Assembly (NCBI RefSeq): GCF_001194135.2
Contig: NC_069008.1
Coordinates: forward strand, 1,546,890-1,610,889
Direction of reading: 5' to 3'
From: Octopus bimaculoides
Taxonomy: Eukaryota
DNA: 64,000 bases
Shown: piece after piece, positions 3,560 through 57,000 of the stretch
How positions within the stretch are numbered: position 1 is the stretch's first letter
How the letters are laid out: each line of letters opens with the position of its first letter
The notes under the pieces: model-generated
The model's input: only the letters and a program-made list of their open reading frames with translations
The model's database searches: none
Told to the model about the DNA's origin: nothing
Made by a program: the position numbers and the translations under genes

Positions 3560-3935
3560 ATGCAGTATGTGGGGATCGGACAATAAGTATAAGCCAGTGT
3601 TAACGGTAGATCCAGAAATTCCAAGCTAGAAACTACAGCCCAGAAGACAAGCTTCATCCTAGAAGATCTGTAGAGCTTGATGAGGACATCTTGAAAACTC
3701 TGGTGGAACAAAATCCCATTGTAACTGCTGAGGAACTAGCAGAGAAGCTTGGATTTGGTCATTCAACCATTCATCAACACCTGCATGCCATCAGAATATT
3801 AATGTCTTTGGTTTCAAGACGAAAGGTATTCTTCCATCAGGATAATGCTTGCCACATAGTCCAAGGATGACATTCCAAAGGCTGGAGCAGTTTGAATGGG
3901 AAACAATGCCCCACCCACCATATTTGCCAGACATT
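3560..3935 (+). mobile_element. Degenerate mariner transposase fragment
   Basis: Translates to EDILKTLVEQNPIVTAEELAEKLGFGHSTIHQHLHAI (HTH) and VFFHQDNA...LEQFEWETMPHPPYLPDI (mariner HDNA / HPPYSPD motifs), with stops. Confidence 0.85.
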
Positions 3936-3971
3936 TGAAGACAGATATTTGTCCTGATCTTGTTTGTTGTT

Positions 3972-4017
3972 AACACAAGGTTTCACTTGATACACCCTCC
4001 AGCCTTCATCAGGTGTC
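3972..4017 (-). ncRNA. Degenerate copy of HHR-1
   Basis: Minus strand reads GACAC CTGATGA A GGCTG...CAAGT GAAA CCTT GTGTT: core intact, stems II and III disrupted. Confidence 0.5.
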
Positions 4018-4266
4018 TTGGGGAAATTTTGAACCTGGGTTCTCATTCCTTAGGTATCATTATTATTATTATTATTCAGGTTACTGCCTGGAATCTTGGG
4101 GTTAGTAGCCTGCACTCTTAACCACTACGGGCATATGGCATAGTGGTTAAGAGCACGGGCTACTAACCCCAAGACTCTGAGTTCAATTCCAAGCAGTGAC
4201 CTGAATAATAACAACAACATTGAAAATTACCTTAGAAATGAGAACCCAGGTTCGAAATTTCCCCAA

Positions 4267-4312
4267 GACACCTGAAGAAGGCTGGAGGGTATATCAGCCG
4301 AAACGTTGTGTT
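4267..4312 (+). ncRNA. Minimal type-I hammerhead ribozyme motif (HHR-1)
   Basis: Stem I GACAC/GTGTT; core CTGAAGA (4272-4278) plus an extra A; stem II GGCTG/CAGCC; GAAA (4300-4303); palindromic ACGT in place of stem III; GUU triplet with predicted cut after 4307. Confidence 0.75.
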
Positions 4313-4470
4313 AACAACAAACAAGATGAGGATAAATATCCGTCAAATGTAAATAATGTACATAATTCCTCATCTCTTAAATATAGAACTGTAAAATCAT
4401 AACCAGCTGATCTTGTATTTCCTTTTACCTAAAACCAGGAACGTTTCAGCACCCCCTTGTGTGTGTACAT

Positions 4471-4692
4471 ACATGAGAGGGTGCTGAAAAGTTCCTGTCT
4501 GTAAGGGTATTGTGAAAGGCCTGGTTAAAAACCAAATTTTCCAAGTTCTTTTACAGGGCTTAGAAAAACTGAAGGACTGCTGCAAAAAGCAAGGGAATCT
4601 GAGAGGGGAACATGTTCAATAAGATCATAACCAGCTGATCCTCCAGTAGTTTCTTTTACCCAAAGCCAGGAACGTTTCAGCACCCCCTCGTA
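4471..4692. mobile_element. Mariner-type MITE
   Basis: TIRs gagagggtgctgaaaagttcct / aggaacgtttcagcaccccctcgta; related partial copies at ~4405-4460 and ~59090-59275. Confidence 0.7.
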
Positions 4693-5049
4693 CATGAACA
4701 TACAAATATACACATACATATGAATATATATACCAGCACACTGGCATGCAGTTTCACGATCCAATCTAAATTCCAGATCCAACATGGGGAAGTTTCCAAG
4801 TATTGTTGTTACATAAATAAAATAACACAAATGGGTTAAAGGCACACTACAGCTGTTTCAGGTGCGTTATTTTTTATTGATGAATAATTCAATTACATCA
4901 TAAAGAAAAAAGTTTTCTTCAGGTGAATTAATAAAAATTTAAAATTGGTTCAGAAAAAAATACCAAAATGTGGAATATAGATTACCCTACTCAGTTCAAT
5001 GTATTCCACATTCCTCTTCAGTGGAGAGGGGTTTCCCTTCAGTGTGGTA

Positions 5050-5563
5050 CAGTAGACTGCCACTAATCTGGCACTAATTTCAGCTAGAAAAATTTTTAAT
5101 TTCCTGGGTTGTCATACCAACCAGCTGCTACAATTTGTTGGTACCACTTGCTGTGTAAACACACATTTGTAAATAAAGGTAAGCCTTACCAGTTTGGCGG
5201 CTAATGCAGTTTTGCACCTCTCCTTGAAAAATGCAGTTTTTTGGAAAACAATTTTCAGATTCCTACGTTTTAGATGTCGGAGATTACCGAATATGTAAAG
5301 CATAAAACACCACACATTGTCCATAAAAGAAAAGGTTGAACTGTTCAAAAAACTTGACAGCGATGTGTCCATGAAAAGATTATGTGAATTACACAACGTT
5401 GGATCTTTGACAGTTTACAACATAAAGAAAAAAACAAAACAAAAAGACCAGTTACTCCATTTCTTTACTAACATTGAGTCAAAGAAACAATTGATAATTG
5501 GGCAAAATCACTAATCCAATAATCCCCAGGTCCCAACAATGCCAGATAATCAGTAGTTAACTG
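5050..5563 (+). mobile_element. Internally deleted Tigger/pogo-like element retaining the N-terminal HTH
   Basis: TA TSD (5048-49, 5564-65); imperfect TIRs cagtagactgccactaatctggca / tgccagataatcagtagttaactg; ORF 5317-5514 SIKEKVELFKKLDSDVSMKRLCELHNVGSLTVYNIKK resembles a CENP-B/Tigger HTH. Confidence 0.8.
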
Positions 5564-6093
5564 TATATTTTATTTCATCTTAATCAACTGTAAGAGTCAA
5601 AATATTATCCCATGTATTTTCACAACAGGCTGTTCCTCCAATGTGGATTTGGTGAATAACAAGATGAGAATTGGAAAAGAATAAATTCCCGTGTATTTCA
5701 CAATGATAGGGGGGTTTTTTCCCCTTCAGTGTGTCATTTTGTGATGTACAAGATGAAAAGGCAGAATTCAAGTTTTTTATTTTTGGTAATTTTCAGGAAA
5801 ATGTTAGCAAATTTGTGTCCTACACTTGGGAATCCATACAATTATAATCTTTAAACTCCCTCCCCAACAAATTCCAAAAGTTTCACTCTTTTTCAAGTAG
5901 AATTTTGGTTCAAGTACCTTTTTTTAGAATTTTCAGAAAAAAAAATTTTTTTGCATAATCGTATGAAATCCTACGTATAGAACAGATTCACAAATTTTTT
6001 TTTTTAAATGCCAACAAATATAAAAGTTTTGAGGGATTTATATAGGGTGCTGAAACCAGAATCCAGCCAATGACAATTATTAAAAAAACATTT

Positions 6094-6750
6094 TTAAGCG
6101 TCTTTCTCAGAGCTAGAGTTATCCCCAGCATGTGTTTTTTGGTGTGTAGTTAAGGCACTGTTGTTTATAAAATATTTTCCACATATTTCACAGAGGAATG
6201 GTTTTTCTCCTGTGTGTACTCTTTTGTGAACTCCAAGAACGGAATTCTGAGAGAATGATTTCCCGCAAATGTCACAAGAATATGGCTTTTCTCCGGTGTG
6301 AATACGTACGTGGGTAACAAGTCCTGAATTCTTGGTGAAGGATTTTCCACAAGTTTCACACCGGAATAGTTTTTCTCCAGTATGTATTCTTTTATGTCGA
6401 ATCAAATCGCTATTATTGGCATATGATTTCCCACATATTTTGCAATGGAATGGTTTTTCTCCAGCGTGCATCCTTTTGTGTCCTATTAACACATCGTTAG
6501 AAAAAAAAGAATCACTACAAATATCGCATTTGTAAGGTTTTTCTCCTGTGTGAAATCTCCTATGTTCCGTTAGATTAAGGTTAGAACTAAAAGATTTACC
6601 ACATATGTCACAGTGATAAAGTCTTTGTATAGTAAATGTCTCACTGCCCAAAGGTTTCACAACAGTGTATGTCTGCGTCACGGGATCCAAATTGGTAAAA
6701 ACAGTTGTGTTGTTGGAAGAATCCAAGACTTTAACGTCCTCCATATTCAT
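6094..6750 (-). CDS. C2H2 zinc-finger protein ZNF-A (6 fingers, subfamily 1)
   Basis: 218-aa ORF with six CxxC-12-HxxxH units and TGEKP linkers; leader MNMEDVKVLDSSNNTTVFTNLDPVTQTY. Confidence 0.9.
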   Translation of the reverse strand: MNMEDVKVLDSSNNTTVFTNLDPVTQTYTVVKPLGSETFTIQRLYHCDICGKSFSSNLNLTEHRRFHTGEKPYKCDICSDSFFSNDVLIGHKRMHAGEKPFHCKICGKSYANNSDLIRHKRIHTGEKLFRCETCGKSFTKNSGLVTHVRIHTGEKPYSCDICGKSFSQNSVLGVHKRVHTGEKPFLCEICGKYFINNSALTTHQKTHAGDNSSSEKDA

Positions 6751-7215
6751 TCTTAATTGTCAAAATCTAAGGAATATCTCTGGAATCTAAGGAATTGTCA
6801 AAATCTAAGGAATATCTCTGACTGTAATATATTGTGGTTCAATTCCTTGTCTTGGATAGTATGGCACTTTGTTTGCAAGTGGGGAGGAATAATCGGAGTA
6901 GATATATTTTCAACTTACCCTAGAATAGTTGTTGCCAACCGAGTCCTTTTTAAATTGCAAACATATTTTTGCAGACAAACCTATGTGCTACTATTTCAAT
7001 GTTATGAAATATGGATATGGTTTAATGGGTGATATGCAGCTTAAAAATGAGGTCAATAAATAAATAAATAAATACCAAAGCAACGTAATCAAATTAAGCA
7101 ATCAGCAAAGACAGGCTTAAATTAAGTGTATTAATTGTAAACTCTGCAGATGTGTAGAAAGGAATAAATCATATTAATCCAAAACCGATGTCGAAGAAAG
7201 AAAATAATTGTGAAT

Positions 7216-7271
<56 letters not shown>

Positions 7272-9189
7272 GAGTGCAAGTGTCTGGTGTATATAAATCA
7301 GAATTGTTTATCATCAAATGTAGAAACGTACAAGTGTGTGTGTGTGACGAATGTGAAGAAAGGTTAATAAAGATATTCATTCATCAATTGCTCATCAATA
7401 TCAATTTCCTTGTAAAGAATTCAGGATGTGGTGTAAGCTTGTAATAGAATGGAATATTTAATCATGTAGACGAGGTAATAAAGTCCTTGAAATATTTAAG
7501 TGGTTCTATGCTATCCCAAACATTAACGTTTCAAGTACAACAATACTAAGTAGGCGGTGTAGAGAATAATTTTTACCTTAATATAAATAAGACTGGTTTC
7601 ATAGAAACAGTTATATTAACTTGCCCTTTCAGATGTACCCAAATGACAGTAAGTTAAAAATCAAAAAAAGCATTGTCCAGTGAAATAACAATCTGCATGT
7701 AAAAAAAAACCCGAGGTTATTAAGGTTGACCAGTAATAATGGGAAATGTAAAAATCGAACTTGGTTTGCTGAAACGAATATGTAAATGCATTTAGATAAA
7801 TAACCACAGCTCTTCTTGATCGAAATTATTTTCGATCTTTTAGGGTTTTTTTTTTACAAAAGTGCCTTCGGATTTCTGTTTTGAACATCGAAGATTCCAA
7901 TTGTGTCACGACTTTCCTGTTCCTTACTTTTTAACACTGAAAATTCTAATGTAAAATTTCTAATAATGTAGAAAAACTGTAGGGTTTAGACAGGATGCTG
8001 TTCACCGCATTTTAAAAATCCATTTTCAAATAAGTTTTATCATATTTTATCATTAACTTTGCAAAGAATAATTTTATCAATAATTTGTTTCCATAATTCA
8101 AGGAATCCAAGTTAATTTTTTGACATACCCTATTGCTGCCGCTTTCCCTAAATTTGATTGTGTAATCACATTATATCAGGGGTGGGGAAAGTTTTTAGTG
8201 AAGCCTGGTACTTATTTTATTGGTCTCTTTGCCGAACCACTAACTTACAGGGATGTAAGCCACCAACACCAGTTGTCAAGTGGTGGTGGGAGATAAAGGT
8301 ACACACATACACAAACATATATATATATATGATGAGCTTCTTTCAGTTTCCGCTTTCCCTAAATTTGATTGTGTGATCACATTATATCAGGGGTGGAGGA
8401 AACTTTTTAGTGCGGCGAGCAAAAAAATTTCAACGAAAAAGGTTCGCAGGTGGATCACAAGTTCTAACTCTGAAATCTGTGTCAATCTTGTATATATCTA
8501 TGTATAATTCGATATACATTAATAAAGATAAGTTTAAGACATTAAATTAACGCTACCACTGAATTTAAGACGTTTATATTACTCATGAGATATTTATATT
8601 TCTCAGCTGGGGTGTAGTTGCGTCAAAAGAGAATGGTGCAAACCTAGCATGATTTTCTGTTCTAGTCTAACCATTTTAAGTCGTAGTGGAAACGCGACCT
8701 ATGTCGCAAAGAGGCATACGAATATTGTATAAATTTTATGATTGAAAAATTGACTATGTTTTGTACAAACGAGTCTACCAGCTTGCAGGCGCAATAAGAT
8801 GGTTACGCGTGCGGGGGATACCCACCCCTGCATTATATGGAAGATTTAGTAAATGTGGTGAAACATTTGGCTCGCTCGCTCGCTCGCTAAATAAATAAAG
8901 TAAGTAAATTACTTGGGACGTGTAAAACATTAGGGTTTACTTCTTGAAATACCAAAACGAAAACAAGATCAAAAGTCTAAAAAAGAGAAACTTGACAAAA
9001 AATTATTTTTCAGAACTTCAGCTGTTATTTCTAACAATTCGAGCGACCACATTAAGACTTCCTCATTTTCTCAGCTGGTTTGACCAGCATAAACACTGTT
9101 GAAATGGAGTGAAGTAGGTATTCCGAAAGCTTGGAGGAGTGCACGATTTTTAAAAAAATTGAAATTTTGGAAATACTGACCGACCTACC

Positions 9190-9224
9190 CACTCATCTGT
9201 CTATCTACCCAGCTATCTATCCAA

Positions 9225-9257
<33 letters not shown>

Positions 9258-9435
9258 CATCTATATATCTATCTATCTATCTATCTATCTATCCATCTAT
9301 CCATCTGTCTATCTATCCATCTATCTATCCGTCTATCTATCCATCTATCTATCCATCTGTCTATCCATCTATCTATCTATCCATCCATCCATCTGTCTAA
9401 CTAACTGTCTATCTATCTATCTATCTATCTACCCA
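9190..9435 (+). repeat. (TATC)n/(TCCA)n compound microsatellite
   Basis: Directly visible tetranucleotide repeats; the overlapping 89-aa ORF is spurious. Confidence 0.95.
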
Positions 9436-29171: not shown

Positions 29172-29564
29172 AATATTTAGGAAATCATTTATTACTGCTT
29201 GTAATTTAACCAAACATAAAGATACACATACAAGAGAAAAGACTTTTCATAGTACTGGGTGCATTTTCTGTGGCACCAGCTCTAGTGAGGTTGCCGTACA
29301 GCTTGCAAAATCCAAGCTTCCATTCAAATGAGGGGGGGGGGCTACAGTAAAGACAGGTTCCTTTATATTAGATGAGAGGTTAATGCACAAGGCTAGCAGT
29401 TTTGGGGTATGGGGTCAGCCAATTATACTGATGTTAACACCTTGCTGGAATTTGAACTTAAAACACAAAGATAGACAAAATGCTACTAAGCCTCTTGCCT
29501 GGTCTGCTAACGATTTTGTGAGTTCACCACCTTCTTTCATATTGTTGGTGGTTGGCACTCTGTC

Positions 29565-29890
29565 GAGGGTTCCAGTTGATCCGATCAACGGAACAGCCTG
29601 CTCGTGAAATTAAAGTGCAAGTGGCTGAGCACTCCACAGACACGTGTACCCTTAACGTAGTTCTCGGGGAGATTCAGCGTGACAAGGTTGACCCTTTGAA
29701 TTACAGGCACAACAGAAACAGGAAAAAAAGAGTGAGAGAAAGTTGTGGTGAAAGAGTACAGCAGGGTTCGCCACCATCCCCTGCCGGAGCCTCGTGGAGC
29801 TTTAGGTGTTTTCGCTCAATAAACACTCACAACGCCCAGTCTGAGAATCGAAACCGTGAGTCTGCTGCCCTAACCACTGGGCCATTGCGC
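29565..29890 (-). mobile_element. SINE family 3 (aacggaacagcctgctcgtgaaatt...gtggctgagcactcc core)
   Basis: Second partial copy at ~57725-57835; the tRNA-like end (gagaatcgaaacc...cctaaccactgggcca) suggests minus orientation. Confidence 0.6.
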
Positions 29891-30209
29891 CTCCACTCTT
29901 CTTTCATATATAATATTGATTTCAAACTTTGGCACAAGGCCAGCGATTTGGGGGTAGAGGGTAAGTGGATTACACTGAACCCAGTGATCATTTGTTACCT
30001 GTTATCAACCCCATAAGGATGAAAGCGAAGTTGACCTCAGTGGAATTTGAACTCAGAATGTAAAAACAGGTGAAATGTTGCTAAGCATGCTAATGATTCT
30101 ACCAGCTCATTTGTGAGTAAACTGAATTTTGTAACAATAATAATAACAATAACAAACTGTTAATATTTATGAAACATATTTATTTGTCATAATGAAAGAA
30201 AGCAAAAGA

Positions 30210-33200
30210 CTAACATCCTGGAATAATTCCGAAAACGAAGAAGGAACTGTCTGAAATACCGAATCCAAGAACTGTGAAGACTTCGTTGTCTTCACCATCA
30301 AGGAATAAATATTGTTTTATACTTTCAGATGTTTGGTGTGGCATATCTCCAGGTATCTGGTAAATATTGTTATATATGTCTGTTATATAAACATATTCAC
30401 CATGTATATTTAGACAAGGTCTGTAAATATAATTCTGATCAAAACCTGGCAGTAGTTTTATACTCCTGACCAACAACTGTTCCCTGTACCAACAGATAAT
30501 ATAGTGACCACCACTCCACCTCTGCCAATCCTTCCATTTCACAATAACAATATCTCCACCAGATGTCACTGCTATATCACTCACCAGAACCTCTCTCTCT
30601 TTCTTCAACACATCCACTCCAGAACACACCCGACAATTATATTTACATGTCCCACCATCAATATCAACTATATCGACATAGTAGTTGTAATAGCATCTTC
30701 CATCTTTAGTTCTGTCTCCAATATCATGACCACCACACACGAGTTGATTGTCGCCGTGTTTATAAATCCTGTTGTAGTATTTCTCAGTGTTGATGGTTTT
30801 TAAACAACAGAGATCTCTTTCAAAGAACATTAGCTGTTCACCAAAGGCAACTATGAAACATTCATCTGTCCACCGACATATGTCTAGTGGTGGTTGAGGT
30901 TGTGGTAGTTGTTTATGTTGAAGTATGTCACCTGTTGTGGTGATCACTGTGACTGTCTCTAAACATAAACACACTGACATTGTTGTCTAACTCAATTAGT
31001 TTACTGTTGTGATCCTTGGTGTCCTCAATATCATAATTAACAGGTTCCTTGAATGCAGGAATGGAAAAAGGGACCATTGCTGTTCTATATGGCAGTCTCC
31101 TCACTGATATTTCATCAATTCCCGACATACACTCTGCTATGTAATTACCACACCTAACCATGAATCTACCTTTACCAACTATTTCACCCGATTTACTTCT
31201 TTCTTCTCCATTGTATTTCAATTTAATTAATTCACTACTGTCTATTTCATTGTTCATCTGAGATGTGATGGAAGGGAAACAAAGACCAGAATCAAGTTTT
31301 GATAATGACATAGATTCCAGAACCTCCAGTTGGTCCCCATCAATCTTTAGACTATGAAATTCACTCAAGCTAATATGTTGACACCAGTAAATACCCCCCA
31401 CTTTTCTCCATATTACACCATAAGGGACGAGACTTGTCCAAACTTTATAATTCACCAAATCTTCTCCATTCAGTTGAAATATTTCTTGTCTGTCAGGAAC
31501 TGTAATCATATTATGTGTTTTCCTTGTGTAAAACACACACCACCAACTAAACTTGCCACATTTCTGTGACATAGCAGCTCCCCGTCTTTATCAAATATTT
31601 TAACATTTCCATTATTGGCTTTTTCACATACAACTGTCTTTCCTTCATCAGAGATATCAATATCTTTTACTTGAACAGGGCAATTGTCTGTCTGTAAACG
31701 ACAGACGACGAATCTTTCCCGATTAGCCTTAAACAAACCTTCAACATACAATTTGTTACAATCACTATATCTGTAGCTTCCAATAAACCTTGGCCCTTTA
31801 CACTTTATACAGGAGAAATTTACCTTATCTTTATAAATTCTTTTATTTAAAAATATTCTGTTGTATTCACCAGTCTGTGTCAAACAGACAATGTTTTTAT
31901 ATTCACTGTAGTCGCTAAAATATCTTTCCCACCAACCATGAACGAACAAAAAACTGTCATCAATTGTCATGTTATAAAACCCAAAATAATCTCGGTAGGT
32001 TCTGACAGAATGTAAATACTGACCATCACCGTTGAAGAAAATGATGAATCGTTTATTATGAACAATAATGACATCATTAGCATTAATTACAACATTATAG
32101 ATCTCATTAATATAATTACTACCCCCATGGCTGTATTTTGTTAATATCTCAGGTATGTCTATTTGTTTATTTTCATTGACAGTCAAATGTATTTAGTCAA
32201 TATCAACAACATACAACTTACATTCGTCTCCCCATTTACTAAAAACCAGTTGACTGTTTGACAATGAAGCCACACATTCATATTTATTTCTTGTCTGGTA
32301 ATTTACCAATGACAATGGAAATTCCACTTTTAATGTCAACAGTTGGGGTTCAACAGCATTATCGTCGTCATCATGATCATCGTCGTCACCACTATCATCA
32401 TCGTTGTCATCATAGTCACCACTATCATCATCGTCATCATCAGAACAACCAGTCATAATAGCCAATGTGTTTGACTGCCATTGACACATATTGATAAAGT
32501 AACTGACATTCAATTTGACAGAATTCAGAAGTTGTCCATCAAATGTGAATATCATAATGTTTTTATTATTAACGTCATATCCTGCAATCAGGTTATTTTC
32601 AGTAATGATTGAACTGTCGATTCTCATTGGTTCTCTGTTTTGTAAACCTGTAGGGACAACATCAATATGTCTAGCTTTGTCAGATCCTGTAGATATAATT
32701 TCGAAGACAACATTTCACTGACACAGATGTTTCTGGAAAACACATCTACCAGGTCAGTGCACATGTCAAGCTGCTTATTAGTAATGTGATCTCTCACCAC
32801 CAGGTTATGATCAGTCATAGCAAACATACGGCTGTTGTCAATCAGATAAACAAACAATTTATCAATACATCCACCAAAGAAATCGAGGGAGGGTTTCATA
32901 TGTGACAATAAAGCACCAGGGACCATCTTACTATTACTGCAACTATCACCACTACTATTGAACTGAAACACTTTTTTCCTAGTAACAATTAATAGCTTTC
33001 GTGTTTCCTTGTCTATTGATAATGATTTCACTACAAAAGGGATATTAATTCTATGAATGATTTCAACTCGATTATAATTTTTAATAGTTAAAATATCTAA
33101 ATGAGATGGTTTATCACAATAACAAACAATTTCACCTCCACCCATCTTACACACCCGTACATAAGGCTGCCCTAATGATACACTTCTCACTGTCTTTGAT

Positions 33201-35554
33201 AGGTTTCCAATGATCCTTAATTGTTTCTGTAGGGGTAATGTGACACCTATTTGATGAGAATCCCATCGACATATATCCGTAGCTGGAGACGGCAGAGATA
33301 ATCTCGTCACAATGTCTCCTTCATTAGAAATGTATAACAAGCAATCATGGTTGATGTCGGACACCACCAACTGTCCATTCTCCAGATTACATATTTTGCC
33401 AATGACAAGTTTTTTGTCATTCTTCTTTTCTTTGAGTCGTAGATTTAGATTTCTGATATAAGGATTTTTGATGTGTAAACGACAGCTGGACCAGTCATGA
33501 CATTTGAAAAGCAGAACCCTGTTGAGTACAATGTCCACTACATAAACTGTTCCTTGGAAAACAGCAATGTGAGAGGGAGCGGTTAGAGGTAGATTCCATT
33601 GCCATTTAATGTCACCATATATATTGTAACATATTACAATAGACTCTCTCCTGAACACAACATAGTAATAAACATTATCAGAGTAGATGTGATGAGGGTA
33701 GCCACAGCATGGAAGGAATTTTTCAAAAAGTTCTTCACCACATGTGGAATAAAATACCATTTTATTTTTCCTTCCATCTAAGACTACAAAATTAATTGGA
33801 GTTGCAGCAATGGTGACATTTTCATGACCCAGAGAAATTCTTTCTATGATGTCAACTTTGTCCTCCTTAATCAATAGGATATGTACTTCCTGTTTGTTTT
33901 CATTTGTGGCCAGAGCTAAACACTTATTGGATACAAGATGACATATCTTAATGTATTCAGCGTGGACCTTTATTAAAGGGCCTTTCGTTAGTTCAGGACA
34001 TGTGATATACTGAAGTGCTTTAATTTCCCAATAAAAAATAAAAAATGTTTTTGAGTTCAATCTACAAAAGACAGAAGGAAGGAAGGGAAAAGTTGAATAA
34101 TTCTGGCGAATTTTTCCCCCAATGTCAGTGAACAATATGGCTTCCTTATTCCTGGAGATTATTAACATAGAAGATGTTGACATAGGTAGAATGTTTGTAA
34201 TATCATAATAATCTTCAATATAAATATGGTTGTACAAAGTGGGAGTATGCAGCTGGTTGGAGTAAGATAACCTGGGCCAAAAGTCTTTAGTTGTCCTAAC
34301 AGCATGAGGAAGACCAAAATAATCAATCAAGAAGATTGTACTCGAGTCAACAGAAATATACCGACCTTTCATGCCAATTTCTTTCTTTGACACACCACCG
34401 GTGCCTGAAATCCTATAAATAATATGCCCCTGGAGGGCATAAAAATGGTTTTGGTACGTAGTTATGCTGATTGGAAGTTCCAGAGAATGGGTACATACTT
34501 CAAATAACTTCTGACCATCTAGGTTATAACAAGCAACTCTGTTGATATTTGAAAATGACAGCAACAGCTTATTCTGTGGACCTACAACAATAGCTGTTGG
34601 TTCCTCTTTGACACTGAATTGCTTTGTAATTTTATTATCTTCTCAATCAATAAAATTTACAGTCTTACTGAACATTTCTACACCTATAACTGTAGAATGT
34701 TCTAAGTATGAAACCTTGTAAAAGCCTAATTGAAGCGTTTTAATTTTAAAACTCTAGGGACTGATAATTAGAATAATTTTCATAAATGGAAGGGTGGCTA
34801 GTACAGTGTCTTCACCGATTCTGGTAAAATCGGTGACAGAAGATGGGCAATGAACATCATTTCTGTTACCGTTTATTTTCACACAACACACCGTCATATA
34901 ATGGTGGGAATACGTTACCACTCCACCCTGTATAATGATAATATTGGATATTGGGTTGCTGAAATCTTCACCAGATTCAGCGAACTTTGCTTCTCTGATC
35001 ACAACTGGAGAAAGAGGTCGAAATTTGTTGGTTATTTTTGGTGGATCAATGCTTCTGTGTTTGTGTTGCAAAACATTTTTCTTTATATATTGTTCCAGAA
35101 ACCATTCAAGTTGTCCAAAGATAATAAAATTGTGGTTGTAATCATATTTCTTAATGTTTTTCTGCAAAATTTCAATTTTCTGTGTAAAATCTTTTAGAAA
35201 ATTACTTTTATCCAATCCAACACTTTTTAAAATGGTACATATTTTTTCCCGCGAATTTACCAACATATTAATTTTGTCTTCATATGCATTGAATCTTGTA
35301 TAATACAGGCATTTGTCCAAAACAACTCGTCTTCCAATTGTTTTACACTTTTTATGGTCTTCTTTATGTCTTTTTTGTTTTGTTGTTGACTGAGATGAAG
35401 AACGGTTCTGTGACGTTTCTGTCACTAAAATATCTCTCCAACATCCATACTTTTTATTGTAGACTCCTTCTTCATCACTTTTTGCTGTTGGATCACAAAA
35501 ATTTGTTTTCCGAGGATTAAGTATTCTTGAAGTGTTTCCTGTATTTCCTTCCAT
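30210..35554 (-). pseudogene. Single-exon ~1,780-aa coiled-coil plus six NHL-like beta-propeller gene, disrupted
   Basis: Six track ORFs read as one protein once in-frame stops (TAG 34754-56, TGA 34643-45, TAA 32193-95) and frameshifts (~32678, ~31510, ~30970) are bridged. Acceptor ttttctttatAG at 35563-62; AATAAA at 30184-30179; recurring DICRW-like blade motif. Confidence 0.8.
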
Positions 35555-37003
35555 AGTGAATCTATAAAGAAAACATATAGCTTTGTGAAACTATTAAATT
35601 TTAAAGATGTTTACTTCATTGTTTTAAACACACAACCAAAACACATATGCATTTCTGTCAGTGTATCAGGCTGTCAAATTAACGTTTAAACAATTTTTCA
35701 TTAACCCTTTGGAAACAGAGCCTCATCTGGAGTTTCAGTGCCAAGAAGATGGAGCCCTTTTCACAAGCCTTACAGAGGACATGCACTTATTTTTCAAAAA
35801 TAATTATAAAAAATAAAGTAATTACTTTACACAAATAAAACTATATATTCTTGTAGGAAATTGAATGAACTAATTCAATCTTTGTCACTCAACTTTTTGG
35901 CCGATAGATTGGTCCTGTCCTCGCCTAAATGTTAAAATAATGATTGGAAATAAATATCTGATGATAATCTTTTGTATAAATATGTGACATATTAGTAAGT
36001 TTTATAAATTACATGGAATATAAAATATTGATTTCAAATTTTGACACAAGGCTAGTAATTTCAGGGGAGGGGGTCAGCCAATTACATTGACCTCAGTGTT
36101 CAACTGGTACCTATTTTATTGACTCAAAAAGGATGAAAGACAAAGCTGACCACAGCAGAATTTGAACTCAGAATATAAAGATGGACAAAGTACCACCCAG
36201 CATGTTAACAATTCTGCCAGCTCACAGACTTAAATGGAATATATATANNNNNNNNNNNNNNNNNNNNNNNNNNNNNNNNNNNNNNNNNNNNNNNNNNNNN
36301 NNNNNNNNNNNNNNNNNNNNNNNNNNNNNNNNNNNNNNNNNNNNNNNNNNNNNNNNNNNNNNNNNNNNNNNNNNNNNNNNNNNNNNNNNNNNNNNNNNNN
36401 NNNNNNNNNNNNNNNNNNNNNNNNNNNNNATATATATATATATACTGGAAATGATATTTTTCAACATCACAAGGTAATAGTCATGTCTAATTTAGATTTG
36501 TTTAATGATAATTAGTTTAACAGATTCACCTATTCCAAAAGTACTCCATAATGTACTCAGCTATAGAGAAGGTTAACTTTAATTGACATAAATTGTATAT
36601 GTCACAATACACATAACAATAATGTTTAAACTTCATTAACACGGAGTAATTAGCAAAATATAGACATTAGGCTTCATATAAGTTGTCAGGTAGAAGATAG
36701 TTTGAACATTTTGATCACGTTCGACTTGAGCACTTCTTCGCTGTCTATGTGTTTCAAAAGAAAATTATAACTATATACATTTCCTCTATTGAGCACTTCT
36801 CATAGACTGCAATAATGGCAAAACAATTTTTAGGTATTTCTACCAAGAACATTCTTATACCATCCAGGGACACATATATGGAATTTATGCAGTAGCAGCA
36901 TGATAAAGTCTCAGAGATTTAGAAATATATTATTTCTATTTTCAAAAATTAGTGAATGTATTTCACTTGAAATATGTTTTCAAAGGCGGATAGGAGTCAA
37001 CAA

Positions 37004-38865: not shown

Positions 38866-39125
38866 ATTCAATAGCAAAACTATTATATCCGTTAATATTG
38901 TCTGTTTCCGTCGGCATTAACTGACTCCTCCCCCACCACCATCGCCTCGACGAAACACACTCTTTGATGTTGTCTTTCAGTCATCGATATCGATTCTGTT
39001 TTCTATCATTTTCTCAAATCTCTTTTACTTGTTTCAGTCATTTGACTGCGGCCATGCTGGAGCACCGCCTTTAGTCGAGAAAATCGACCCCAGGACTTAT
39101 TCTTTGGAAGCCTAGTACTTATTCT

Positions 39126-39612: not shown

Positions 39613-39909
39613 CTTATTCTATCTGTCTGTTTTGCCGAACCGCTAGTTTACGGGGACGTAAACACACCAGCATTGGTTGTCAAGCGATGGTGGGGGGACA
39701 AACACAGACACACAGACACACACATATATATATACATATATACGACAGGCTTCTTTCAGTTTCTGTCTACCAAATCCACTCACAAGGCTTTGGTCAGCCC
39801 GAGGCTATAGTAGAAGACACTTGCCCAAGGTGCCACGCAGTGGGACTGAACCCGGAACCATGTGGATCGGTTAGCAAGCTACTTACCACATTTTTTTTTT
39901 CTATTTCTT

Positions 39910-40320: not shown

Positions 40321-40878
40321 AACTAATTTACACAAGAATAAGGTTGTTGATTTCTATTGCCTAAAATCTAGACCATTCTCTAAAATCCCTATTTGATAGG
40401 GATAAGTTCATTAACTCCATTAAAAAATTATATCGCTAAGATGTAATATTGTTGTATCTTCTACTATTTAAATATTTTCTGTATCTTATACCGTTGTTTC
40501 ATTCTTTTTTCAGCTTATCAAATGACATTTGTGATTCAAGGATTGCTTACATGAGATATATCATCAGTATTTAACATCTTTTGAAGATTAAAAGAAAATG
40601 TTTTACAGAAATGATATGATCCAGATTATATAAACCTGTGATGAATTACAGTAAAATATTTCATTTGAACAGAGGTGAATAGCAACATTTTTCTTGCAAC
40701 ATTTAGATGATACATTAAGCTTGGACACATTAGCGAAGAAGTTTTTAGCTGCTTCGAATATCAACAAAGATCAGAGATGATGGGAGTATAGTTGTAGAAA
40801 TATTTGTTAAAAATAAATGTATAACTGAAAAGAAAAAAAAAAATTAAAGATCTCTGTTATAATGAAAGTAGAAAAATT

Positions 40879-41994
40879 ATGGAACATACGTTATGTGAGA
40901 AGAAAGATGAATTTAAAACACAATGTAAAACTATTAATTTTCCTGATGATATAAAGAAAGAGAAAAAGAAAACACCTTATCAATGTGACATCTGTGGTAA
41001 ATCGTTCTCTGACAAATGGCTTCTCACTAATCACAAACGTATTCACACAGGAGAGAAACCATATCACTGTGATATTTGTGGTAAATCATTCTCTCAAAGT
41101 AGTTACTTAATTGTTCATGTACGCATCCACACTGGAGAGAAACCATATCACTGTGATATCTGTAGTAAATCATTCTCTGATAAAGGAGCTCTCACTAATC
41201 ACAAACGTATTCATACAGGAGAGAGACCACATCATTGCGATATCTGTGGTAAATCATTCTCCCAAAGGAGCAACTTAATTGTCCACATACGTATTCATAC
41301 AGGAGAGAAGCCATTTCACTGTGATATCTGTGGTAAATCTTTCTCTGTAGGAAGTAGCTTGACTAAACACAAACGCATTCATACAGGAGAGAAACCATAT
41401 CACTGTGATGTCTGTGATAAGTCTTTTTCTGGAAGTAGTGATTTGACTCTTCATAAACGCTTTCACACAGGTGACAAGCCATATCAGTGTGATATCTGTG
41501 GTAAATCATTCTCACAAAATACACACTTAACTGAACATAGACGTATTCACACTGGAGAAAAACCGTATCAATGTGATATCTGTGGTAAATCATTCTCTGA
41601 AAGTAGTCCCTTAACTCTTCATAAACGCATTCACACAGGGGAGAAACCATATCACTGTGATATCTGTGGTAAATCATTCTCCCGAAGTAGTGAATTATCT
41701 AGTCACAAACGTATTCATACAGGAGAGAAACTATATCTCTGTGATATTTGTGGTAAATCTTTCTCTCACTCAAATACCTTAACTACTCACAAATATATTC
41801 ATACTGGAGAGAGACCCTATCACTGTGATATCTGTGGTAAATCATCCTCAACATCTGGTCAATTTGCTATTCATAAACGTCTCCATACAGGTGAGAAACC
41901 ATATAACTGTAATATCTGTGGTAAATCATTCTCCAAGTCTGCTCAATTCGCTATGCACAAGTGTATTCATACAGAAGAAAAACCATATCACTGA
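40879..41994 (+). CDS. C2H2 zinc-finger protein ZNF-F (12 fingers, subfamily 2)
   Basis: 371-aa ORF; leader [29 protein letters not shown]; candidate acceptor ttcAG at 40512-13. Confidence 0.93.
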
Positions 41995-47899: not shown

Positions 47900-48782
47900 T
47901 TAAGGAGAAATTTCTCATCTGATACTTGAAAGACGTGTTTGTCATTCCTTCCACCTTACTGTATCACATGCTGCACCTGAATATTTTCCAAGAAATTGAG
48001 ATTTTGTGATAAAAGAAACCTACAGCTGGTTCTCATATTAATCAGTATGTCAAGCAAAATGTAAACACCATTTTTACCACAATAAAGGAGGGAAAACAGT
48101 TGTTAAAGCTTGTTCAATCTAGTGTGACAAGATGTGGTGTAGTTAAATAATTATATCTACAGTTTACTTGTATGGCGATGTGGTAATGTTGTTGTATCTC
48201 TTCTTTCTCTTATACTGCTTTTTTTCCTATCCTTATTTCAGATTATCAAATGACATTTGTGGTTATAGGATTGCTTACAGCAGAATCATCATACATCATC
48301 AATATTGATCATCTTTTGAAGATTACTTAAGTGATATAATCTGCTTATATAAATCTCTGGTGAATTAGTGAAATATTTCTTCTGAATGGTGATTAATAGC
48401 AAAATTTTTTCTTGGAATGTTTAGATGATAAAACTAAACTTGGACAAATTTACAAAGGAGTTTTCAGCCTCTTCAAATCTCAACATAGATCAGAATTGAT
48501 GAAAATATAACAGCAGAAATATTTGTTACAAATAATATGTGAGTGAGGAGAAAAATAGAATAAACATATTTATTTAAGTGTGACTGTGTGGTAAGAAGTT
48601 TGCTTCCCAACGACATGGTTCCAGGTTTAGTCCCACTGTGTGGCACTTTGAGCAAGTAATTTCTACTGTAGCCCGAGGCCAACCAAAGCCTTCATTTGAC
48701 TAAAACCCCACAAGGCAGTGCCTCAGCATGACTTCTGTCCAATGTCTGAAACAAATGATATTTTAGCAAGAGAAGAAAAATT

Positions 48783-49808
48783 ATGGAAAATAAATTATGT
48801 GAGGACACAGTTGAATTTAAAACAGAATTCAAACCTATTGATTTTCCTGATAATATAAAGAAAGAGAAAAACGAGACACCTTCTCTATGCAACATTTGTG
48901 GTAGGTCGTTCTCTGAAAAAGATCACCTCACTAATCATAAATGTATTCACACAGGAGAGAGGCCATATCATTGTGATGTCTGTGGTAAGTCATTCTGTCA
49001 AAAAGTTCATTTAACTGTTCATGTACGCGTCCATACAGGAGAGAAACCTTATCACTGTGATGTCTGTGGTAAATCATTCTCTGTAGGAAGTACCTTAACA
49101 AAACACAAACGCATTCATACAGGAGAGAAACCATATCACTGTGATGTCTGTGGTAAATCATTCTCTGGAAGTAGCGACTTAACTCAACATAAACACTTTC
49201 ATACGGGTGAGAGACCATATCGTTGTAATGTGTGCGGAAAATCATTTTCAAAAAGTCCACACTTAACTGTACATAAACGTATTCACACAGGAGAGAAACC
49301 GTATCAGTGTGATATCTGTGGTAAATCATTCTCTGGAAGTAGTCCCTTAGTAATTCATAAACGTGTTCATACAGGAGAGAAGCCATATCACTGTGATATC
49401 TGTGATAAATCGTTCTCCCAAAGTACACATTTGACTGTCCATAGAAATAGTCACACAGGAGAAAAACCATATCAGTGTGATATCTGTGGTAAATCATTCT
49501 CAAAAAATCCATACTTAACTATACATAAACGTATTCACACAGGAGAAAAACCATATCAGTGTGATATCTGTGGTAAGTCATTCCCTGGCAGTAGTGCCTT
49601 AGCTACTCATAAGCGTGTTCACACAGGAGAGAAACCATATCAGTGCGATGTTTGTGGTAAACCATTCTCACAAAGTGCACACCTAACTGTACATAGACTT
49701 ATTCACACAGGAGAAAAACCATATCATTGTGATATCTGTGGTAAATCATTCTCAAAAAATAAATATTTAAGTACTCATAGATGTATTCACACAGAAGAAA
49801 ACCCATAG
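48783..49808 (+). CDS. C2H2 zinc-finger protein ZNF-G (11 fingers, subfamily 2)
   Basis: 341-aa ORF; leader [29 protein letters not shown]; candidate acceptor at 48240-41; AATAAA at ~49866. Confidence 0.93.
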
Positions 49809-54267: not shown

Positions 54268-54873
54268 AAGTAACATTCATGGTTAAAGGATTGCTTACAG
54301 CAGAGTCATCATACATCATCAATATTTATCATCCTTTGAAGACTAAAAGAAATACTTTACTGAAATGTGCTTATATAAATCTCTGGTGAATTAGTGAAAT
54401 ATTTCTTCTGAACGGTGATTTATAGCAACATTTTTTCTTGGAATTTTTAAATGATAATCTAAATTTGGACAAATTTACAAAACGGTTTTCAGCCTCTTCA
54501 AATCTCAACATAGATCTGAATTGATGGAAATATAACAGCAGAAATATCTGTCACGAATAAAATATGTAATAATTCAGCAAGTATTTTCTACTGTAGCCCC
54601 AGGCCAACCAAAGCCTTGTGAGTGGATTTAATAGACAAAACTGAAAAAAGACCATTATATATATATGTGTATTTCTGTGTTTGTCACCTACCCCACTTCA
54701 CATCTGGTGTAAATTTATGCTCTGTATCTTGACAGTTCAGCAAAAGAGACCACTACAATGAGTATCAGACTTAAGGAAACTTTGACTAAAACTCTACAAG
54801 GCTGTGGCTTCAGCATGGTTGCTATCCAATGACTGAAACAAGCAGATACTATTTTAGTGGGAAAAGGAAAATT

Positions 54874-55876
54874 ATGGAAAATAAATTATGTGAAAACACA
54901 GTTGAATTTAAACCTATTGATTTTCCTGATAATATAAAGAAAGAGAAAAGAGAAACGCCTTCTCTGTGCAGTATTTGTGGTAGGTCGTTCTCTGACAAAG
55001 ATCACCTCACTAATCATAAATGTATTCACACAGGAGAGAGGCCATATCATTGTGATGTCTGTGGTAAGTCATTCTGTCAAAAAGTTAATTTAACTGTTCA
55101 TGTACGCGTCCATACAGGAGAGAAACCTTATCACTGTGATGTCTGTGGTAAATCATTCTCTGTAGGAAGTACCTTAACAAAACACAAACGCATTCATACA
55201 GGAGAGAAACCATATCACTGTGATGTCTGTGGTAAATCATTCTCTGGAAGTAGCAACTTAACTCAACATAAGCTCTTTCATACAGGTGAGAAACCATATC
55301 ACTGTGATGTGTGCGGCAAATCATTTTCAAAAAGTCCACACTTAACTGTACATAAACGTGTTCACACAGGAGAGAAACCGTATCAGTGTGATATCTGTGG
55401 TAAATCATTCCCTGGAAGTGGTCCCTTAATAATTCATAAACGTGTTCATACAGGAGAGAAGCCATATCACTGCGATATTTGTGGTAAATCGTTCTCCCAA
55501 AGTACACATTTGACTGTCCATAGAAATAGTCACACAGGAGAAAAACCATATCAGTGTGATATCTGTGGTAAATCATTCTCAAAAAGTCCATACTTAACTA
55601 TACATAAACGTATTCACACAGGAGAAAAACCATATCAGTGTGATATCTGTGGTAAGTTATTCCCTGGAAGTAGTGCCTTAACCACTCATAAGCGTATTCA
55701 TACAGGAGAGAAACAATATCACTGCATTGTTTGTGGTAAATCGTTCACGCAAAGTGCGCAATTGACTGTACATAGACGCGTTCATACAGGAGAAAGACCA
55801 TATCAGTGTGATATCTGTGGTAAATCATTCTCAAAAAATAAATATTTAAGTACTCATAGATGTATTCACACAGAAG
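54874..55876 (+). CDS. C2H2 zinc-finger protein ZNF-H (11 fingers visible, runs into a gap)
   Basis: Finger-for-finger paralog of ZNF-G. ATG 54874 matches the paralog start; the upstream ATG at 54829 lies in a SINE end. Confidence 0.9.
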
Positions 55877-56629
55877 NNNNNNNNNNNNNNNNNNNNNNNN
55901 NNNNNNNNNNNNNNNNNNNNNNNNNNNNNNNNNNNNNNNNNNNNNNNNNNNNNNNNNNNNNNNNNNNNNNNNNNNNNNNNNNNNNNNNNNNNNNNNNNNN
56001 NNNNNNNNNNNNNNNNNNNNNNNNNNNNNNNNNNNNNNNNNNNNNNNNNNNNNNNNNNNNNNNNNNNNNNNNNNNNNNNNNNNNNNNNNNNNNNNNNNNN
56101 NNNNNNNNNNNNNNNNNNNNNNNNNNNNNNNNNNNNNNNNNNNNNNNNNNNNNNNNNNNNNNNNNNNNNNNNNNNNNNNNNNNNNNNNNNNNNNNNNNNN
56201 NNNNNNNNNNNNNNNNNNNNNNNNNNNNNNNNNNNNNNNNNNNNNNNNNNNNNNNNNNNNNNNNNNNNNNNNNNNNNNNNNNNNNNNNNNNNNNNNNNNN
56301 NNNNNNNNNNNNNNNNNNNNNNNNNNNNNNNNNNNNNNNNNNNNNNNNNNNNNNNNNNNNNNNNNNNNNNNNNNNNNNNNNNNNNNNNNNNNNNNNNNNN
56401 NNNNNNNNNNNNNNNNNNNNNNNNNNNNNNNNNNNNNNNNNNNNNNNNNNNNNNNNNNNNNNNNNNNNNNNNNNNNNNNNNNNNNNNNNNNNNNNNNNNN
56501 NNNNNNNNNNNNNNNNNNNNNNNNNNNNNNNNNNNNNNNNNNNNNNNNNNNNNNNNNNNNNNNNNNNNNNNNNNNNNNNNNNNNNNNNNNNNNNNNNNNN
56601 NNNNNNNNNNNNNNNNNNNNNNNATACAC

Positions 56630-57000
56630 ATAGGTGTAGGAGTGGTTGTGTGGTAAATAGCTTGCTTATCAACCACATGGTTCTGGGTTCAGTCCCACTG
56701 CGTGGCACCTTGGGCAAGTGTCTTCTACTATAGCCTCGGGCCGACCAAAGCCTTGGTAGATTGAAACTGAAAGAAGCCCATCGTATATATATATATATGT
56801 GTGTGTGTGTATGTATATATATATATATATATATACCGATGGTGGTGTGTTTACGTCCCCGTAACTTAGCGGTTCGGCAAAAGAGACCGATAGAATAAGT
56901 ACTAGGCTTCCAAAGAAAAAGTCCTGGGGTCGATTTGCTCAACTAAAGGCGGTGCTCCAGCATGTCCACAGTCAACTGACTGAAACAAGTAAAAGAGTAT
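56630..57000 (+). mobile_element. tRNA-derived SINE family 2
   Basis: gtgtggtaaatagcttgcttatcaaccacatggttctgggttcagtcccactgcgtggcaccttgggc...actgaaacaagtaaaaga. Confidence 0.85.

Follow-up and report, generated by a model that had tools for sequence, protein, structure and literature searches.

The window analysed here is a stretch of 64,000 nucleotides (nt) of Octopus bimaculoides DNA (contig NC_069008.1, positions 1,546,890 to 1,610,889 of the forward strand). Inside a cluster of C2H2 zinc-finger genes, its minus strand carries at 30183-35554 one colinear reading frame of 1,794 amino acids (aa), which lies in a single exon after the lesions that interrupt it are bridged. We consider this locus, with a probability of roughly 80%, to be a pseudogene copy of a multi-copy octopod gene family with six diverged NHL-type beta-propeller modules. 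Six long open segments are present on the minus strand (35590-34757, 34642-32627, 32714-32196, 32192-31509, 31587-30931, and 30986-30213) in DNA of ~35% G+C, and the second of them runs for 672 aa without a stop. In tblastn, the segments align end to end and colinearly with single proteins of other octopuses, and one copy of the gene was found in the whole window. The repaired frame starts at the ATG at 35554 and terminates at the true stop TAA 30182-30180, with the C-terminal residues ...FAFFHYDK. The original prediction had described one giant single-exon gene of ~1,780 aa marked by six recurring blade motifs. We found the size to agree, the relatives to be single open reading frames (ORFs) of 5,025-5,352 nt, and all six motifs to lie in the repaired protein, at aa 239, 492, 757, 1022, 1339, and 1558. 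The features of the locus are listed below, where m1 to m6 are the modules, NHL is the NHL domain of the cuttlefish protein P0092, and percentages are from hhalign.

30183-35554, minus strand: whole pseudogene coding region (tblastn colinearity, repaired translation, intact single-ORF relatives of 1,782-1,830 aa)
35555-35574, minus strand: acceptor-like tract TTTTCTTTATAG and a 7-nt leader before the ATG, read from the sequence, with the AG at 35563-35562
35006-35554, minus strand: N-terminal region, aa 1-183 (composition, hidden Markov model (HMM) of the N-region, helices in the P0003 model, ratio of nonsynonymous to synonymous substitution rates (dN/dS))
34250-35005, minus strand: module 1, aa 184-435 (m1-m2 75%, m1-m3 50%; 23-24 strands in the P0003 model), which holds the stops 34756-34754 and 34645-34643
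33452-34249, minus strand: module 2, aa 436-701 (m2-m6 90%, m2-m4 87%, m2-m3 84%; ~23 strands)
32669-33451, minus strand: module 3, aa 702-966 (m3-m6 96%, m3-NHL 64.5%), with a near-identical family patch at ~33020-33400 and the frameshift near 32680 at its end
31718-32668, minus strand: module 4, aa 967-1283 (95.4% and 45.6 bits to the NHL of P0092; 24 strands), with a poly-Asp insert and the assembly TAA 32195-32193
31059-31717, minus strand: module 5, aa 1284-1503, the shortest (m4-m5 88.5%, m5-NHL 24%; ~16 confident strands and a disordered insert), with the frameshift near 31511
30183-31058, minus strand: module 6, aa 1504-1794 (m6-NHL 89.7%, m3-m6 96%), with the frameshift near 30955 and TAG 30212-30210
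30179-30184, minus strand: AATAAA overlapping the true stop codon (TAA 30182-30180), from the sequence

The tract TTTTCTTTATAG ends at 35562, and the exon would begin at 35561 if this predicted acceptor is used. An acceptor-like tract and a polyadenylation signal, as pointed out in the original prediction, are both present, the latter as AATAAA 30184-30179. The true 3' untranslated region of the window copy may be longer than AATAAA suggests, because homology to the locus of the O. vulgaris relative P0029 continues as far as 29929. On the upstream side, homology between the window copy and paralogous loci continues for ~110-140 nt. Rfam gave no match over 29500-36200.

The N-terminal region (aa 1-183) is basic, with 20% Lys and Arg against 11% Asp and Glu, and contains only five Cys and five His residues. 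A charged and helical stretch of ~190 aa had been noted here; the charge is a basic one over 183 aa, and the helices are seen in the modelled part, which is the last stretch of the region in the P0003 model. By Pfam, neither a RING nor a B-box occurs in the window or in the full-length relatives, and hhalign detects no likeness (0.1%) between the N-region and the coiled coil of P0092. Upstream exons encoding a RING or B-box, which had also been proposed, are contradicted by the full-length relatives, which begin at this same ATG and lack both domains. In addition, no signal peptide, hydrophobic N-terminus, or membrane-length hydrophobic segment was found, which argues against the suggested receptor role.

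The remainder of the protein is divided into six modules of 220-317 aa (220-320 aa in the family). We compared the modules with each other by hhalign, with 50-59 sequences per module and reversed-sequence controls. Besides the pairs listed above, m4-m6 reached 94% and m3-m4 92%. The module pairs align in register over 170-240 columns, while the reversed controls stay at or below 2.2%. These profiles indicate that all six modules, propeller-sized as originally proposed, are mutually homologous through a connected network at 75-96%. A first comparison with only 4-19 sequences per module was weak, and self-BLASTP found no internal repeats in the repaired protein; the repeats are visible only at the profile level.

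Most plausibly, the modules are beta-propellers of a diverged NHL type; among recognisable relatives, the closest is the NHL domain found in a TRIM-NHL protein of a cephalopod. This protein, P0092 from a cuttlefish, has 656 aa and carries RING, B-box, and NHL domains by Pfam, with the NHL domain at aa 400-656. Module 4 matches this domain at 95.4% (E value (E) 1.7e-8), followed by module 6 at 89.7%, module 3 at 64.5%, module 5 at 24%, module 1 at 6%, and module 2 at 5%; the alignments of modules 4, 6, and 3 are in register over ~185-245 columns. HMMER gave 45.6, 27.8, 20.7, and 19.8 bits for modules 4, 3, 6, and 5, respectively, against the same domain. The divergent family member P0079 shows a sub-threshold Pfam NHL match of 18.5 bits against a cut-off of 20 (E 0.002). 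Among 13 sequence matches in the PDB, all non-significant (E at least 0.23) and informative as a pattern only, eight are NHL domains of TRIM71, TRIM2, or TRIM3, aligned at the characteristic blade motif. The NHL kinship named in the original prediction thus agrees with hhalign, HMMER, and the pattern of PDB matches.

Between them, AlphaFold2 models of two relatives span all six modules as well as the end of the N-terminal region. All modules are modelled as all-beta, with 23-24 strands in modules 1, 2, and 4 and ~22 in modules 3 and 6; module 5 has a disordered insert and ~16 strands predicted with confidence. The fold class is clear from the best Foldseek matches, which are multi-propeller chains, DDB1, LRP2/megalin, and IFT-A (E 1e-18 to 1e-21, at template modelling scores (TM-scores) of only 0.1-0.2), in line with the repeated propellers foreseen from the sequence. 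The earlier figure of ~36 blades does not follow, however, with 23-24 strands in modules 1, 2, and 4 but only ~16 confident ones in module 5.

These Foldseek matches are also an argument for regarding the modules as WD40-type or YWTD-type propellers rather than NHL-type ones, since DDB1 is WD40-like and LRP2 belongs to the YWTD class; in addition, two WD40/STAND proteins matched at E 1e-5 to 1e-7 in an exhaustive search. Nevertheless, whole-model Foldseek favours any multi-propeller chain, and the TM-scores are low. The window segments and relatives gave no WD40-family Pfam match at E up to 1, and no Pfam match to LDL-receptor class B (YWTD), EGF, or LDL-A. The sequence profiles lead instead to NHL domains, namely those of P0092, of TRIM71/2/3 in the PDB, and of Pfam below threshold. 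We therefore regard a WD40 or YWTD origin of the modules as unlikely.

The lesions were checked in contigs of public runs from one species, which belong to several studies from 2015 to 2025. In the assembly, the frame is interrupted by four in-frame stops (TAG 34756-34754, TGA 34645-34643, TAA 32195-32193, and TAG 30212-30210), the last of which falls ten codons short of the normal family end. Three frameshifts accompany them: a 10-nt deletion between TCTGAC direct repeats near 32680, a gain of AT or a loss of 1 nt near 31511, and a 2-nt loss near 30955. At position 32195, the assembly reads A but the single-copy contigs of four runs read C, which gives GAA (Glu), the residue of the relatives, instead of TAA; the assembly base is probably a reference error or a private allele. 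The stops at 34756 and 34645 lie inside single-copy contigs of four runs (X1, X2, X3, and X8), and the frameshift near 32680 lies within contigs spanning 32405-32735 in four runs, in both cases with no change reported. The stop at 30212 is located within contigs spanning 30180-30798 in three runs (X2, X3, and X8), and the frameshift near 30955 within a contig spanning 30909-31068 in one run (X2), again with no change reported at either position. Three stops and two frameshifts are thereby confirmed, each in one to four runs, and one stop is refuted. The original count of three stops and three frameshifts is matched by the assembly for the frameshifts, whereas the assembly holds four stops, from which the reads remove the one at 32195.

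Run X2 carries a further 13-nt deletion at 34419 that is not found in X1, X3, or X8; such an additional, polymorphic lesion is what would be expected without constraint. At 32346-32442, the poly-Asp insert DDDDDDSGDYDDNDDDSGDDDDHDDDD is specific to this copy and derives from a 30-nt tandem repeat. Its length is unstable or confused with paralogs, because the read contigs there show many alternative joins. The inactivation originally claimed is confirmed by the reads, and the null allele offered as its alternative is not: all runs with coverage of the lesions, from four studies, show them alike, and the window copy therefore looks like a fixed or common pseudogene rather than a rare null allele.

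Transcription of the window copy was judged from a few RNA runs. The raw reads of run X24 fall only on family-conserved patches, where they show fixed mismatches, and the depth is zero in copy-specific parts. Because of these mismatches the reads derive from paralogs, which are thus transcribed. In one RNA run, 63 reads skip 98 nt at 32051-32148 with non-canonical ends (GT..TC, plus strand), and the same run has a fixed C>T at 32030; these reads come from an expressed paralog with a deletion or an odd splice. With at least three confirmed stops, two confirmed frameshifts, and no copy-specific RNA in run X24, the window copy itself is without function of its own.

The reads also speak to the possibility that the animal has an intact, functional gene here and that the lesions are assembly errors. 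The assembly does contain many N gaps, the stop at 32195 is contradicted by the reads of four runs, and no contig covers the frameshift near 31511. Against this stand the stops at 34756, 34645, and 30212 and the frameshifts near 32680 and 30955, all confirmed by reads from different studies and years, together with the extra deletion at 34419 in one run and the raw-read RNA run that leaves the copy-specific parts empty. This explanation is very improbable.

Two homolog searches yielded 74 clusters of proteins, which come only from Octopus vulgaris, O. sinensis, and O. bimaculoides and are without exception named "uncharacterized" or "hypothetical"; Pfam domains occur among them only on a few fused or merged models. 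Intact single-exon ORFs of 1,782-1,830 aa occur in each of these species (at least nine relatives of this length), and many other database members measure only 400-1,300 aa and cover different parts. Two members of 1,913 and 1,925 aa were found in Argonauta hians, and intact members overall have ~1,660-1,925 aa in a single coding exon. The intact relatives that had been anticipated thus exist in three Octopus species and in Argonauta. P0032 of O. bimaculoides is an uninterrupted ORF of 5,352 nt, and the divergent member P0070 one of 5,025 nt. The coding sequence of P0029 (O. vulgaris) is one block of 5,352 nt, whereas its gene model begins 17.5 kb upstream of the coding exon, as would be expected if a noncoding 5' exon were joined by splicing to the acceptor that immediately precedes the ATG.

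In an exhaustive search, a profile of the C-terminal half was run against 1.84 billion representative proteins. It returned 30 matches in all, mostly Octopus proteins already known, with about a dozen short ones unnamed. The named matches outside Octopus are the two Argonauta hians proteins, the cuttlefish TRIM-NHL protein P0092 (E 5.7e-5), and the two WD40/STAND proteins, which we set aside as generic propeller similarity. A homolog search with the cuttlefish protein at a strict cut-off gave two proteins. In the searches run, the family appears to be restricted to octopods, having been seen only in Octopus species and Argonauta. When HMMs were built with the target sequences excluded, they detected the complete set of six modules, in unchanged order, both in the divergent members from Octopus and in Argonauta; the HMM of the N-region matched P0070 and Argonauta. 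The architecture is therefore older than the split of those lineages.

The P0029 locus in O. vulgaris is a tandem array in which a frameshifted pseudogene is followed by the intact gene and then by the next member, and many members are located on a single 29.2-Mb chromosome of this species. Besides the window copy, a second family pseudogene with several frameshifts lies at 3903-9340 of locus L002 (O. vulgaris OX597841.1), head to head with the P0029 gene model; a 411-aa protein is annotated on its N-terminal part (L002 8105-9340). Many short octopus "hypothetical proteins" are probably fragments of family members, some of them dead. Another O. vulgaris model, P0026, combines C2H2 zinc fingers with ~45 residues from the propeller family and is most likely a merged model of neighbouring genes. 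The family expands in tandem arrays, and pseudogenes are a frequent fate of its copies.

Between two intact paralogs, dN/dS is 0.55 overall and rises to ~1.0-1.4 over the first 100-170 codons, which indicates a fast-evolving N-terminal region. The nucleotide identity between the window copy and a paralog is ~75-80% overall, 95-96% at 33020-33400, and 91-93% at 31500-31725; the synonymous difference is 0.07 in the patch 33020-33400 versus 0.3-0.5 elsewhere. The k-mer depth at these two patches is ~100x single copy in DNA runs. From this depth we estimate ~100 copies of the 5.4-kb exon per genome, which we read as sharing near-identical DNA in the patches. Gene conversion or nucleotide-level constraint could account for such conservation. 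Neighbouring O. vulgaris copies consist of mosaic blocks that are 75-100% identical, which we read as the expected pattern of gene conversion.

The high copy number and the single exon would also be accounted for if the ORF belonged to a mobile element or an endogenous virus. In keeping with this idea, the k-mer depth reaches ~100x at the conserved patches, many copies are dead, and interspersed repeats lie nearby. However, Pfam shows no reverse transcriptase, integrase, transposase, or capsid domain. Copies share no termini, and their homology reaches only ~110-140 nt beyond the ORF on the upstream side and 40-250 nt on the downstream side. Moreover, members lie in tandem arrays, each of three Octopus species has just one close counterpart of a certain divergent member, and the modules descend from a host-type NHL domain. 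With neither element domains nor shared termini, we rejected a mobile origin, which has only a very slight chance of being right. The weakest alternative, several separate one-propeller genes or fragments, draws on the many family proteins of only 400-1,300 aa that cover different parts, but is nearly negligible in view of at least nine relatives of 1,782-1,830 aa, the uninterrupted P0032 and P0070, the single 5,352-nt block of P0029, the unchanged module order in Argonauta, and short models that are gene-predictor output for pseudogenes, as with the 411-aa protein annotated on the L002 pseudogene.

A pseudogene of a six-propeller NHL-type family thus remains our preferred reading, and the following observations weigh against it. 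Pfam gave no model at threshold on the window segments or the full-length relatives, including NHL (PF01436) at its gathering score on the window segments, P0032, P0029, P0060, P0065, P0070, and P0077. The NHL link of modules 1, 2, and 5 on their own is weak (5-24%), and they are joined to it via the other modules. The NHL subtype rests on sequence, and the best Foldseek matches are WD40-like and YWTD multi-propeller proteins. The confidence of the AlphaFold2 models is moderate, with a mean predicted local distance difference test (pLDDT) of 66.8 and 67.6 and a predicted TM-score (pTM) of 0.36-0.55; module 5 looks short at ~16 confident strands, and strand counts are the basis for blade number and ring closure. 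No contigs of at least 99% identity were found over 31445-31509, so the frameshift near 31511 is without read cover, as is the assembly join across this conserved patch. Finally, contigs of run X16 at 2-4x match the copy-specific stretch 33949-34891 with one mismatch, and they may represent trace transcription or DNA carry-over.

In the surroundings of the gene, the zinc-finger ORFs to the right of the pseudogene share an N-terminal motif and have 63-90% mutual identity, compared with 50-64% for those to the left. The proposed position at the boundary between two zinc-finger subfamilies is therefore loosely supported. Two of the ORFs, 48759-49805 and 54790-56730, are 90% identical, which points to a recent local duplication, and their N-terminal motif (RKIME..LCE..EFKT) is common with ORF 40825-41991. 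No zinc fingers were found within 10 kb of three paralogous loci that were fetched, and thus close zinc-finger adjacency is not a general feature of the family. Upstream of the gene, the block 36444-36713 is 77% identical, in the same orientation, to L002 9574-9856, which lies 234-516 nt upstream of the pseudogene ATG there; a promoter or 5' exon common to both copies is a possible explanation. Between the window block and the gene lies an N gap (36248-36429). Loci L002, L001, and L003 also carry a short interspersed repeat of the window (39613-39890 and 39020-39125), with a dozen or more copies at 78-97% identity in the 43-kb L002.

NHL propellers are RNA and protein binders, as exemplified by Brat, LIN-41, and TRIM2/3. 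From its domain layout, the intact protein could work inside the cell as a multivalent, non-enzymatic binding platform of ~200 kDa. RNA or peptides would bind to a face of each propeller, as in those proteins, and the N-terminal helices would serve partner binding or self-association. The pattern of duplication and loss would fit the recognition of variable targets. Taken as a whole, this mechanism is tentative and has less than even odds. Immunity or the control of selfish elements is our best guess at a role, because tandem arrays, pseudogene decay, and relaxed constraint fit variable targets. A more specific and decidedly speculative proposal, with a small chance of being right, is that the intact family forms an octopod-specific intracellular recognition system. 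In this proposal, ~100 fast-turnover genes with six RNA- or peptide-binding propellers would act against viruses or mobile elements and would be associated with C2H2 zinc-finger clusters by position and perhaps also functionally. The near-identical patch 33020-33400 might then be maintained by gene conversion because it encodes an interaction surface common to the family. Such a system would loosely resemble the TRIM-family partners of KRAB zinc-finger genes in vertebrates.

Six NHL-type propellers in one chain without a TRIM module would be a new architecture. Literature searches found no description of the family or of this six-propeller arrangement, and Pfam has none, in agreement with the original prediction that the architecture was unrecognised. 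Cephalopod genome papers stress the expansions of zinc-finger, protocadherin, and G-protein-coupled receptor genes. The present family looks comparable in size to some of these expansions, yet it is carried as "uncharacterized protein" without a domain call. If octopods have a recognition or scaffolding system of their own, this family is a concrete candidate for it. The lesson for annotators is that many short octopus "hypothetical proteins" are probably pieces of this family.

Among known systems, the TRIM-NHL proteins (TRIM71/LIN-41, TRIM2, TRIM3, Brat, and P0092) are the closest. The octopod modules appear homologous to their NHL domain, with hhalign up to 95.4% over the whole domain of ~250 aa. 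The hallmark blade motif of the octopod family (IAGYD..N.NIKIFT.DGQLL) is common with TRIM71, and both groups are of the cytoplasmic type without a signal peptide. However, the octopod proteins have six propellers instead of one and lack a RING, a B-box, and a recognisable TRIM coiled coil, and hence an E3-ligase module. Furthermore, the octopod family falls below the Pfam NHL threshold and has a single coding exon and ~100 copies.

In bivalves, expanded TRIM/NHL-like families typically have one propeller behind a B-box and a coiled coil. They resemble the octopod family as mollusc-lineage, fast-evolving genes for NHL-type propellers, but the octopod proteins possess six propellers and no zinc-binding module, and were seen in octopods only in the searches run. 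Our literature searches returned descriptions of neither the bivalve expansions nor the octopod family.

Several beta-propellers per chain are found in DDB1, SF3B3, and CPSF160, which have three WD40-like propellers, and in LRP2, LRP4, LRP5, and LRP6, which are strings of YWTD propellers. The octopod family shares this feature, but no sequence relationship to these multi-propeller scaffolds was detected. In the case of the LRPs, the proteins are secreted or membrane-bound and carry EGF and LDL-A domains between the propellers; the octopod proteins have none of these. The propellers of the DDB1 type are seven-bladed and interleaved, unlike those of the octopod family. Nevertheless, proteins of the DDB1 type act as binding platforms, which is the mechanism that we suggest for the octopod proteins.

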